DNA of 64,000 nt, taken from Podarcis vaucheri (lineage: Eukaryota). The DNA is taken from assembly GCA_965113315.1 (NCBI GenBank), contig OZ220371.1; one strand, written 5' to 3'. The notes beneath the pieces were generated by a model. The model did no database searches and had not been told where the DNA came from. It was given only the letters and a program-made list of their open reading frames with translations. The position numbers and the translations under genes were made by a program. This document shows, in pieces, positions 24,515 through 57,763 of the stretch. The stretch's first letter is position 1. Each line of letters opens with the position of its first letter.

Positions 24515-24774
24515 NNNNNNNNNNNNNNNNNNNNNNNNNNNNNNNNNNNNNNNNNNNNNNNNNNNNNNNNNNNNNNNNNNNNNNNNNNNNNNNNNNNNNN
24601 NNNNNNNNNNNNNNNNNNNNNNNNNNNNNNNNNNNNNNNNNNNNNNNNNNNNNNNNNNNNNNNNNNNNNNNNNNNNNNNNNNNNNNNNNNNNNNNNNNNN
24701 NNNNNNNNNNNNNNNNNNNNNNNNNNNNNNNNNNNNNNNNNNNNNNNNNNNNNNNNNNNNNNNNNNNNNNNNNN
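24515..24774. other. Assembly gap (N run)
   Basis: Run of N. Confidence 1.
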
Positions 24775-34104: not shown

Positions 34105-35017
34105 CTAAACAACACTCTCCGCAAACCCAGAGACCTCCAGACGTCCAGGCCGGGAGAGGCGCAGGAAAGTAACCAGAGCGGCTGCATTCAATTCCAAAGG
34201 TGGGAGGGGGAAGGAAGCGGAAAACAGGAGGAGTAGGGGGGGGCCGAAATCCTGGAAAGCGGAAAACTACACACACACACGCACGCACACACATACCAGC
34301 GCGCGCGCAAAGAAGCTCAACTCGCCAACCTTGCCACTGCTCCAAGAGAAGATACGTTTCCAAAGAGAGATTCGCCTGTAAACAAAATCGAACCGAGGGA
34401 AGAAATGATCACAACGCGCTTTCACTGGCTTGTGTTTAATAATAAAGAAATAAGAAGCAGGGGCGCCCGGCAGCAATAGGTTTCCACTCCGGTGGCTTCT
34501 TCGGACCAGGCCTCCAAGAAGCGATCATCGCCGCCGCCTCCCTGTCAGAGGAAGGAGGCGGCCAGAAGCACCGGTGCCAGAGAGAAAGAGAGGAGAAAGA
34601 GAGCGGATTTCTGCTTCTGGGCACCGGGCGCAAGCTCTCCCTCATCGCCGCCGTTTTCTCCTTGGCCGCCGAGCGCTTCTTTCCCGCTGGAAGCCAAGTT
34701 GCGCGAGTGCGAGAGAAGTTTCCCCATGAAGGACTGAAGCCCTCTCCGGCGGCTGCGCGCAGCTCCAATGTGAACAAGGAAAGGAGCCGGCCGCCAAACT
34801 TTGCCGCCCGAGGAAGCGGGCTGCTGCTGTTGCTGCTGCCGCCTCCCCCCACCCTCCTGCCTGCCCGCCGGGGGTGGTGGTGCTGCCCGGTGCTGCCCAC
34901 TGGCGCTGCGGTGCTCGTCTGGAGCAGGCTTGGCGTGCGCGGGCGCGCGCGGCGGCGGCGTTGGATCCGTCCACGTACTGCGAGAGCCCGGTGTACAGCC
35001 CGGACGTGTGCCCCAAC

Positions 35018-36097
35018 ATGATCGCGGCGCAGGCCAAGCTGGTGTACCAGCTGAACAAGTACTACACGGAGCGCTGCCAGGCGCGTAAGGCGGCCATCGC
35101 CAAGACCATCCGCGAGGTGTGCAAGGTGGTGTCCGACGTGCTCAAGGAGGTGGAGGTGCAGGAGCCGCGCTTCATCAGCTCGCTGAGCGAGATCGACGCG
35201 CGCTACGAGGGCCTGGAGGTCATCTCGCCCACCGAGTTCGAGGTGGTGCTCTACCTCAACCAGATGGGCGTCTTCAACTTCGTCGACGACGGCTCGCTGC
35301 CCGGCTGCGCCGTGCTCAAGCTGAGCGACGGCCGCAAGCGCAGCATGTCGCTCTGGGTCGAGTTCATCACGGCCTCGGGCTACCTGTCGGCGCGCAAGAT
35401 CCGCTCGCGCTTCCAGACGCTGGTGGCGCAGGCGGTGGACAAGTGCAGCTACCGCGACGTGGTCAAGATGATCGCCGACACCAGCGAGGTGAAGCTGCGC
35501 ATCCGAGAGCGCTACGTGGTGCAGATCACGCCCGCCTTCAAGTGCACGGGCATCTGGCCGCGCAGCGCGGCGCAGTGGCCGCTGCCGCACATCCCCTGGC
35601 CGGGGCCCAACCGCGTGGCCGAGGTGAAGGCGGAGGGCTTCAACCTGCTCTCCAAGGAGTGCTACTCGCTGACGGGCAAGCAGAGCTCGGCCGAGAGCGA
35701 CGCCTGGGTGCTGCAGTTCGGCGAGGCCGAGAACCGCCTGCTGCTGGGCGGCTGCCGCAACAAGTGCCTGTCGGTGCTCAAGACGCTGCGCGACCGCCAC
35801 CTCGAGCTGCCCGGCCAGCCGCTCAACAACTACCACATGAAGACGCTGCTGCTCTACGAGTGCGAGAAGCACCCGCGGGAGACCGACTGGGACGAGGCGT
35901 GCCTGGGCGACCGGCTCAACGGCATCCTGCTGCAGCTCATCTCGTGCCTGCAGTGCCGGCGCTGCCCGCACTACTTCCTGCCCAACCTCGACCTCTTCCA
36001 AGGCAAGCCGCACTCGGCCCTCGAGAGCGCCGCCAAGCAGACCTGGCGCCTGGCCAGGGAGATCCTCACCAACCCCAAGAGCCTCGACAAGCTATAG
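35018..36097 (+). CDS. MAB21L2: Protein mab-21-like 2 (Mab-21/cGAS-fold family), single exon, 359 aa
   Basis: ATG at 35018 gives MIAAQAKLVYQLNKYYTERCQARK...REILTNPKSLDKL*. Paralog-2 diagnostic residues (VYQLNKYYTER, SLSEIDARY, SLDKL) are present, with E49/R51 in place. It is nested antisense in an LRBA intron, the known arrangement. The ORF-track start at 34874 is a GTG, not the canonical start. Confidence 0.98.
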   Translation: MIAAQAKLVYQLNKYYTERCQARKAAIAKTIREVCKVVSDVLKEVEVQEPRFISSLSEIDARYEGLEVISPTEFEVVLYLNQMGVFNFVDDGSLPGCAVLKLSDGRKRSMSLWVEFITASGYLSARKIRSRFQTLVAQAVDKCSYRDVVKMIADTSEVKLRIRERYVVQITPAFKCTGIWPRSAAQWPLPHIPWPGPNRVAEVKAEGFNLLSKECYSLTGKQSSAESDAWVLQFGEAENRLLLGGCRNKCLSVLKTLRDRHLELPGQPLNNYHMKTLLLYECEKHPRETDWDEACLGDRLNGILLQLISCLQCRRCPHYFLPNLDLFQGKPHSALESAAKQTWRLAREILTNPKSLDKL

Positions 36098-57303: not shown

Positions 57304-57763
57304 NNNNNNNNNNNNNNNNNNNNNNNNNNNNNNNNNNNNNNNNNNNNNNNNNNNNNNNNNNNNNNNNNNNNNNNNNNNNNNNNNNNNNNNNNNNNNNNNN
57401 NNNNNNNNNNNNNNNNNNNNNNNNNNNNNNNNNNNNNNNNNNNNNNNNNNNATTTATAAAGCANNNNNNNNNNNNNNNNNNNNNNNNNNNNNNNNNNNNN
57501 NNNNNNNNNNNNNNNNNNNNNNNNNNNNNNNNNNNNNNNNNNNNNNNNNNNNNNNNNNNNNNNNNNNNNNNNNNNNNNNNNNNNNNNNNNNNNNNAAGAA
57601 AGTGTTAACTTTAATGAATACTTCTGTTACANNNNNNNNNNNNNNNNNNNNNNNNNNNNNNNNNNNNNNNNNNNNNNNNNNNNNNNNNNNNNNNNNNNNN
57701 NNNNNNNNNNNNNNNNNNNNNNNNNNNNNNNNNNNNNNNNNNNNNNNNNNNNNNNNNNNNNNN
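57304..57763. other. Gapped region: three N runs separated by 12-bp and 36-bp sequence islands
   Basis: N runs at 57304-57451, 57464-57595 and 57632-57763. Confidence 1.

Follow-up and report, generated by a model that had tools for sequence, protein, structure and literature searches.

The 57 nucleotides directly before the AUG of MAB21L2 in the window analyzed here (the whole stretch of DNA under study, 64,000 nucleotides in length) appear to be coding, and to specify a minor form of the protein that is longer by 19 residues and is started at a UUG codon. Comparison of sequences leads us to assign this reading a probability of about 0.8. The UUG extension itself is real, conserved, and very probably translated. 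Given that such an extension is already known for human MAB21L2 from a survey published in 2022, the present result confirms an earlier finding rather than adding a new one, and its value lies in confirming an entry of a human table in a distant lineage. The features concerned are the following.

34727..34729, plus strand: TGA, the nearest in-frame stop codon 5' of the CDS, as read from the sequence
34874..34960, plus strand: in-frame leader between the upstream GTG and CTG codons and the TTG, not conserved and without codon periodicity
34961..34963, plus strand: candidate UUG (TTG) initiation codon, in the context gcggcgTTGg (-3 G, +4 G)
34961..35017, plus strand: putative NH2-terminal extension of 19 codons, (M/L)DPSTYCESPVYSPDVCPN, sharing the reading frame of the CDS
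35018..36097, plus strand: annotated, AUG-initiated MAB21L2 CDS, a single exon of 359 codons plus TAG, from the list of open reading frames

Protein comparison identifies positions 35018..36097 as MAB21L2 from a sauropsid, a gene with a single exon. The 359-residue product shows 96% identity to P0003 and is 100% identical to the COOH-terminal part of P0001, a protein that the tree assigns to the MAB21L2 clade; relatives carry the Pfam domains PF03281 and PF20266. G+C is found at 219, 146, and 355 of the 359 first, second, and third codon positions, respectively. The 45 Leu codons of the CDS comprise 27 CTG, 17 CTC, 1 CTA, and 0 TTG.

The TTG at 34961-34963 and the ATG at 35018-35020 lie in frame, 57 nucleotides or 19 codons apart, and the intervening segment reads LDPSTYCESPVYSPDVCPN, so that the peptide including the candidate start Leu is L-DPSTYCESPVYSPDVCPN. 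These coordinates had been given in the earlier note, and our re-reading agreed with them, as it did with the context described there for the TTG and with the A at +4 of the ATG; the ATG (caacATGa) also has A at -3, a strong position that went unmentioned in that note. The frame contains no stop codon from TGA 34727 to ATG 35018, and no extension can be longer than 96 codons because of the TGA at 34727-34729. The nearest upstream ATGs, at 34726 and 34768, open two tiny out-of-frame uORFs. Since 34768 is the last ATG before the CDS, the 247 nucleotides from 34771 to 35017 are free of ATG in any frame, in agreement with the ATG-free interval of 34774-35017 noted previously; the limit at TGA 34727-34729 that had been described was likewise correct. 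Other in-frame near-cognate codons located 5' of the TTG are GTG at codons -48, -47, and -46 and CTG at codons -45 and -33. Two of these GTG codons, at 34874 and 34877, have G at both -3 and +4.

The composition of the segment changes in step with the codons. Third positions of the 19 extension codons are G or C in 18 cases (9/10/18 for the three positions; A/T at 10/9/1), and the corresponding count for the CDS is 355 of 359, so the CDS-like triplet periodicity that had been claimed is present; recounting also reproduced the reported A/T figures and the 7 of 29 T-ending codons between 34874 and 34960. In a hypergeometric test, for which the reading frame was set beforehand by the CDS, the probability that at most 1 of the 20 A/T letters falls at the 19 third positions was 5.8e-4. 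A codon-usage log-likelihood model built from the MAB21L2 CDS gave the extension +3.6 bits in frame and -38.8 and -30.1 bits in the other two frames. All 605 upstream windows of 57 nucleotides scored below the extension (mean of -25, standard deviation of 13, maximum of +2.0). Comparison of in-frame blocks of 19 codons showed that periodicity begins at TTG 34961, with G+C counts of 17/16/14 upstream, 9/10/18 in the extension, and 10/5/19 in the first CDS block; across the leader at 34874-34960 the counts are 26/21/22 of 29. Seventeen of the 19 extension codons are G/C-ending codons also used in the CDS. The exceptions, TTG and GAT, are absent from the CDS (0 of 45 Leu and 0 of 15 Asp codons). 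With an overall G+C content of 65-68% in the leader, next to a G+C-rich gene, a functionless accident of composition might be considered. We regard it as highly improbable, however, since the 9/10/18 pattern occurs in just 1 of 662 leader windows, the published PhyloCSF score is 291.6 (PMC9789052), and both paralogs retain the peptide across vertebrates ranging from teleosts to amniotes, which already contradicts such an explanation.

The same peptide is encoded in frame 5' of the ATG in MAB21L2 of teleosts and sauropsids and in MAB21L1 of teleosts, amphibians, and amniotes. MAB21L2 proteins with the tail are P0003 and those of Arapaima (P0008, P0015) and Hemibagrus (P0004, P0029). MAB21L1 proteins with the tail are, among tetrapods, those of amniotes (P0020, P0023, P0041, P0180, P0182), Pleurodeles (P0183), and Xenopus (P0318), and, among teleosts, P0030, P0184, P0321, P0324, and P0327-P0331. 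A whole-length protein search and cluster listings revealed the tail in all extended vertebrate proteins found, with two spliced models as partial exceptions; such database proteins appear solely where the frame is open, so that a species with a stop codon in the segment would stay hidden. Among 18 sequences, D2, P3, Y6, C7, P10, P14, C17, P18, and N19 were invariant, and the fixed pattern is D-P-x-x-Y-C-[ED]-x-P-V-[YF]-x-P-[DE]-[LVI]-C-P-N. Replacements are mostly conservative (S/T, T/A/G, E/D, S/T/P, Y/F, S/N/P/G, D/E, and L/V/I). Of the two SP motifs for which the earlier note suggested a possible phospho-switch, the first is the only [ST]-P kept in both paralogs, with P-P-P in place of [ST]-P in two ostariophysan teleosts, and the second is N-P in MAB21L1. 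Indels keep the frame: one codon is added in Hemibagrus and Metynnis (PPPV), and 22 codons, rich in His and Pro, are added between LDPSAYCE and PDLCPN in P0189. The latter protein is a fast-evolving teleost copy in the MAB21L1 clade; the tree ruled out a cyclostome origin for it. Judged from these alignments, the tail motif is no younger than the last ancestor shared by teleosts and tetrapods and tolerates in-frame indels alone, and its presence in both MAB21L1 and MAB21L2 implies that it is older than their split. The coding signature was examined here at the amino acid level and as composition within the window, and the DNA-level PhyloCSF scores are those of the literature, for mammals.

A degenerate pattern representing codons 1 to 15 of the vertebrate CDS, searched separately, matched one metagenome contig (L001, Ga0065711_1079509), possibly human contamination, whose protein is MAB21L1 and is identical amniote-wide. 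A teleost-type pattern gave no match in genome contigs or viral contigs.

Human MAB21L2 (ENST00000317605.5) and MAB21L1 (ENST00000379919.5) are both included in PhyloSET (Fedorova et al. 2022, Nat Commun 13:7910, PMC9789052, Suppl. Data 1A), a collection of 60 genes with predicted non-AUG NH2-terminal extensions (PMC9789052). For the MAB21L2 extension, PhyloCSF computed over 20 codons from 120 mammals is 291.6, and the score of MAB21L1 is 228.3 (PMC9789052). The start call based on Ribo-seq for human MAB21L2 is a TTG, with transcript positions 1052-1109 corresponding to 19 codons (PMC9789052); given that the extension begins at transcript position 1048, the annotated human leader exceeds 1 kb (PMC9789052). 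The extension has a Ribo-seq rank of 4331, coverage of 7.14%, and a proteomics count of 0, and the values for MAB21L1 are 41% coverage and 0, respectively (PMC9789052). Thirty genes were re-annotated by GENCODE, with MAB21L1 and MAB21L2 not being among them (PMC9789052). A literature search for further work on the MAB21L2 extension found none beyond Fedorova et al. 2022. The proposal of the earlier note that the segment is translated from the UUG to yield a 378-residue proteoform thus gains support from both the comparative tests and the published PhyloCSF analysis of the human ortholog, which names the same TTG 19 codons upstream; its statement that a similar stretch occurs before the ATG of MAB21L2 and MAB21L1 was also borne out, with other vertebrates encoding ...VY(S/N)PDLCPN directly before the ATG.

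Conservation of the 57 nucleotides might instead reflect an element that is not translated, located in the 5' leader or the DNA and acting in translational control, protein binding, or a promoter-proximal role, with a frame that is open by accident. The regions of MAB21L1 and MAB21L2 are known for deep noncoding conservation, which counts for such an element. A human translation signal that is near nil (Ribo-seq coverage of 7%, proteomics count of 0) is also in its favor (PMC9789052). We nevertheless consider this explanation unlikely: the three-base periodicity resembles that of the CDS, with third positions G or C and positions 1 and 2 held, the frame survives the insertion of 1 or 22 codons, amino acid replacements are mostly conservative, and PhyloCSF as published gives a strongly positive value (PMC9789052). 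The predicted RNA fold was unremarkable (z = +0.41), and an Rfam search of the segment returned as its sole result a sub-threshold miRNA match (E = 0.7). An RNA element was rejected on the basis of this folding score and the absence of an Rfam match.

The position of the start is a separate question. Translation of the segment might begin elsewhere, or additionally elsewhere, at an upstream near-cognate codon or, in some species, at an upstream AUG, with the Leu being an ordinary residue. The in-frame GTG codons at 34874 and 34877, with G at -3 and +4, would be available for this purpose; some teleost models do begin at in-frame upstream ATGs (MASPPP...SLDPS in Arapaima and MSSLDPS in Hemibagrus), and in MAB21L1 a further conserved block is kept, as is a further start 27 codons upstream. 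Fedorova et al. 2022 also stressed how difficult it is to establish the precise position of a non-AUG start (PMC9789052). In MAB21L2, however, the TTG marks the onset of peptide conservation as well as of codon periodicity, with the alignment of upstream translations among species ending one or two Ala or Ser codons before the Leu. In addition, TTG encodes none of the 45 Leu residues of the CDS, and ORF callers, which allow ATG, GTG, and TTG only, select this same Leu codon as the start in several lineages (P0003, P0020, P0331, P0023, and P0189; a literal L is printed for the start codon in P0023 and P0189, as is the practice of JGI). Together with the human Ribo-seq-based call of a TTG at 19 codons (PMC9789052), these observations make a start elsewhere improbable.

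For the UUG-initiated extension, we propose that a few scanning ribosomes would start at UUG 34961, with its favorable G at -3 and +4, and thereby produce a 378-residue proteoform in which the tail (M)DPSTYCESPVYSPDVCPN is attached to the Mab-21 nucleotidyltransferase-like core. The majority of ribosomes would bypass the UUG and initiate at the AUG, with A at -3, to yield the 359-residue form. UUG is among the weaker near-cognate start codons, and this weakness, combined with the strong -3 A of the downstream AUG, suggests that the long form should be minor. Initiation at the UUG, the scarcity of the long form, and any role that the tail may have as a docking or modification site are inferred. 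The tail is a short motif rich in Pro, Cys, and Tyr and is probably unstructured; an AlphaFold2 model based on the 18-sequence alignment had a mean pLDDT of 33.6, a value that tells nothing about the tail. The NH2-terminal tryptic peptide expected of the long form is (Ac-)MDPSTYCESPVYSPDVCPNMIAAQAK.

MAB21L2 and MAB21L1 are developmental genes, and human eye malformations result from variants in them. Coding sequence that lies 5' of the AUG and is missing from the annotation would change the reading of variants assigned to the "5' UTR" and would affect the design of morpholinos, knock-ins, and NH2-terminal tags. If the extension is translated, it would provide a second proteoform of the protein. 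The depth of the motif, its presence in both paralogs, and the restriction to in-frame indels make a bench test worthwhile.

In invertebrate Mab-21 proteins, the Met corresponding in alignment to vertebrate Met1 is preceded by a tail that starts at AUG, such as MLVP[SPA]DM in arthropods and MLLEGSSPDM in mollusks. Tails of nemerteans, annelids, and sea urchins are longer, at 30-75 residues (approximately 50 in sea urchins). Additional NH2-terminal residues are therefore normal for the family. Many of these tails have [SP]-P-D as their last residues ahead of the Met; unlike the vertebrate tail, they start at AUG. The nemertean tail MYENG...SPPYSPLQCKN... contains a stretch, SPPYSPLQCKN, that resembles vertebrate SPVYSPDLCPN. 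In a shuffling test of homology between invertebrate and vertebrate tails, the best P value was ~0.003 among 78 tails, which was not significant after correction. It is conceivable, if doubtful, that the vertebrate UUG tail is a remnant of an ancestral, AUG-started bilaterian Mab-21 tail whose start was switched; the long form would then be produced at a level that is low or regulated, and the tail would serve in docking or modification. The nemertean resemblance and the [SP]-P-D endings of arthropods and mollusks are the clues to such an origin. On this supposition, the change from AUG to UUG may have taken place in the vertebrate stem before the split of MAB21L1 and MAB21L2, and the motifs of the tail ([ST]-P, a PY-like PPxY in some teleosts, and two fixed Cys residues) may tune MAB21L function in development of the eye and midbrain.

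The closest known counterparts of the UUG extension are the human MAB21L2 and MAB21L1 rows of PhyloSET, which concern, as here, an orthologous gene with the same in-frame segment and a TTG 19 codons before the AUG; the amniote MAB21L1 peptide has the same motif as the MAB21L2 tail. The survey of Fedorova et al. 2022 is confined to mammals and presents these genes as table rows, without experiment, annotation change, or discussion (PMC9789052), whereas the present window is that of a sauropsid. Beyond the human rows, we find the motif as far back as teleosts for MAB21L1 and MAB21L2 alike, with in-frame indels, and describe the composition signal of a gene whose third codon positions are 99% G+C. 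Validated non-AUG extensions that arise by leaky scanning include those of VANGL2 (AUA), PTEN-L (CUG/AUU), FXR2 (GUG), and SFPQ (see also PMC11065751, PMC4892431). The MAB21L2 extension differs from these examples in that it has just 19 residues, would be started at UUG, and is a predicted one, but it resembles them in having an in-frame near-cognate codon in good context upstream, no intervening AUG or stop codon, and a putative coding signature.

The MAB21L2 coding sequence (CDS) is a single exon, and the sequence preceding its ATG contains the following features.

Start-site features of MAB21L2
34726–34737, out-of-frame uORF in the presumptive 5' leader, ATG AAG GAC TGA
34768–34773, out-of-frame minimal start-stop uORF in the presumptive 5' leader, ATG TGA
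34961–34963, TTG, with 19 codons up to the ATG read as L-DPSTYCESPVYSPDVCPN
35018–36097, plus strand, MAB21L2 CDS, 359 codons plus TAG (ATG at 35018–35020)

The product shares 100% identity over the matching part with P0001 and 96% with P0003, two database proteins related to MAB21L2, and Pfam domains PF03281 and PF20266 are present in relatives. The earlier note had described an in-frame, TTG-led segment of 19 codons before the ATG, and all details stated for it hold, including the coordinates of both codons, the TTG context (gcggcgTTGg, with G at –3 and +4), TGA at 34727 as the first upstream in-frame stop, and the absence of ATG throughout 34771–35017. For the context of the annotated ATG (caacATGa), the A at +4 was given correctly and the A at –3, a strong position, was omitted. 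ATG occurs 4 times in the final 1 kb upstream of the main ATG, fewer than the 11.5 (SD 3.2) expected after shuffling. At 34822–34841 the leader contains a GCT/CTG triplet repeat, gctgctgctgttgctgctgc, which shares the CDS frame and precedes the conserved part. A polymorphic CAG repeat is known from the 5' UTR of human MAB21L1. Runs of N, either gaps or masked sequence, are located at 24515–24774 and 57304–57763.

The composition of the segment resembled that of the CDS. Third positions are G or C in 18 of 19 codons, compared with an extreme 355 of 359 in the CDS, and G+C at codon positions 1 and 2 is 9/19 and 10/19; with 20 A/T letters among the 57 positions, the probability that third positions receive one or fewer is 5.8e-4. 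A codon-usage log-likelihood derived from the CDS reached +3.6 bits in frame, against –38.8 and –30.1 in the other two frames, whereas all 605 upstream 57-nt windows gave a mean of –25 (SD 13) and a maximum of +2.0. The periodicity begins at the TTG, with the preceding 19 in-frame codons having G+C counts of 17, 16 and 14. Seventeen of the 19 codons end in G or C and are used in the CDS itself; TTG and GAT, codons 1 and 2, never appear there (0 of 45 Leu and 0 of 15 Asp), which fits constraint acting on the start codon and on positions +4 to +6 rather than ordinary codon choice. A 525-aa antisense ORF spanning MAB21L2 (34436–36013, minus strand) is a by-product of the 99% third-position G+C and does not count as evidence for a gene. 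The proposal that the segment is a structured RNA or belongs to a known RNA family was not supported, with a fold z-score of +0.41 and nothing near threshold in Rfam.

Many gene models and ORF calls extending upstream of the annotated Met came from a junction-region search, a search with the whole 378-aa protein and two cluster listings. The frame must be open for an extended protein to be seen, so that species carrying a stop would escape detection in such data; among the vertebrate upstream-extended models returned, every one contained the same peptide, with the spliced models from Neotoma (P0021) and Aix (P0022) retaining only its distal part.

Forms of the peptide in other vertebrates
MAB21L2, P0003 (teleost-type sequence): (M)DPSTYCDSPVYSPDLCPN
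MAB21L2, Arapaima: ...SLDPSTYCDTPVYPPDLCPN and ...ALDPSAYCETPVYPPDICPN
MAB21L2, Hemibagrus (UniRef name MAB21L1, yet placed with teleost L2 in the tree): ...SLDPSAYCDPPPVFGPDLCPN
MAB21L1, amniotes, Pleurodeles, Xenopus and many teleosts: ...AALDP[ST]AYCETPVYNPDLCPN
MAB21L1, Metynnis: ...EPPPVYNPELCPN

D2, P3, Y6, C7, P10, P14, C17, P18 and N19 were invariant in an alignment of 18 sequences, and replacements across the set were S/T, T/A/G, E/D, S/T/P, Y/F, S/N/P/G, D/E and L/V/I. Both indels keep the frame: one codon is added in two ostariophysan teleosts, and 22 codons in P0189 (JGI metagenome contig, 2122 nt), a fast-evolving copy within the teleost MAB21L1 clade of the tree that reads LDPSAYCE, a His/Pro-rich insert, PDLCPN and then MVAAQ. 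A conserved element acting only at the nucleotide level leaves unexplained the free third positions, the in-frame indels, the conservative replacements or the published PhyloCSF score (PMC9789052).

P0001 was the only 100% match, agreeing with all 378 residues encoded in the window and differing immediately upstream; this model carries an UNVERIFIED_CONTAM flag in a Gekko kuhli assembly. The protein tree does not resolve bird from reptile. P0002 and P0024, from Logan contigs, join a MAB21L2-like NH2-terminus to a MAB21L1 body and probably arose by chimeric assembly of both paralogs; they were therefore set aside as independent evidence. A metagenome scan with a degenerate pattern found a single contig (Ga0065711_1079509), encoding with the extension a MAB21L1 protein (P0023) identical across amniotes, and this contig, which may be human contamination, was left out of the comparisons. 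The teleost-type pattern had no match in genome or viral contig collections. Bird and chicken-gut RNA runs (X15–X20, among 24 runs listed) contain conserved parts of the stretch.

The MAB21L2 alignment ends with the one or two Ala/Ser codons that precede the Leu, and nothing aligns further upstream. Initiation may lie further upstream in this species, which has in-frame GTG at –48, –47 and –46 and in-frame CTG at –45 and –33. The conservation edge favours the TTG. ORF calls beginning exactly at the Leu show it as M (P0003, P0020, P0024, P0025, P0027, P0028, P0331) or, in JGI calls, as a literal L (P0023, P0189). Such ORF callers probably take only ATG, GTG and TTG as starts; if so, TTG also encodes this Leu in amniote L1 and in both teleost paralogs. 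Ahead of LDP, MAB21L1 carries a second conserved block, K-L-A-P-x-x-x-A-A, from teleosts to mammals (P0329, P0330, P0181, P0184, P0318, P0183, P0041), and the ORF calls P0329 and P0330 (386 aa) begin at the Leu of this block, 27 codons up. A 19-residue extension started at UUG is the best-supported explanation, with a probability of about 0.8, initiation and function being what we infer. A structure prediction (mean pLDDT of 33.6) was too poor to use.

Invertebrate Mab-21 proteins start with AUG upstream of the Met aligned to vertebrate Met1. Their tails read MLVP[SPA]DM in arthropods, MLLEGSSPDM in molluscs and MYENG...SPPYSPLQCKNDGPI in Lineus and relatives, and comprise 30–75 residues in Paralvinella, Lamellibrachia and sea urchin. 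The Lineus-type SPPYSPLQCKN resembles vertebrate SPVYSPDLCPN, a likeness that is tempting; in a shuffle test the best P value among 78 tails was ~0.003, not significant after correction.

PhyloCSF has been applied upstream of every human CDS across 120 mammals, and the 60 genes kept (PhyloSET) include both paralogs in sheet A of Supplementary Data 1 (Fedorova et al. 2022, Nat Commun 13:7910; PMC9789052).

Human PhyloSET entries, with the Ribo-seq summary column in parentheses (PMC9789052)
MAB21L2, ENST00000317605.5, 20 codons, PhyloCSF 291.587 (TTG; 1052–1109; rank 4331; cov 7.14), proteomics 0
MAB21L1, ENST00000379919.5, 36 codons, PhyloCSF 228.275 (TTG; 991–1072; rank 1950; cov 40.91), proteomics 0

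The human MAB21L2 interval spans 57 nt and therefore identifies the same TTG, 19 codons up; that of MAB21L1 spans 81 nt, or 27 codons, matching the second MAB21L1 start of P0329 and P0330. The main text of that study names neither gene, and both are absent from the 30 genes re-annotated by GENCODE (PMC9789052); our literature searches on the MAB21L2 extension found no other paper. Our analysis traces the conservation, for MAB21L1 and MAB21L2 alike, to the ancestor shared by teleosts and tetrapods, and adds the in-frame indels and the composition signal of a gene whose third positions are 99% G+C. The extension is the sauropsid orthologue of one already listed for human MAB21L2 (PMC9789052) and is therefore counted as already known.
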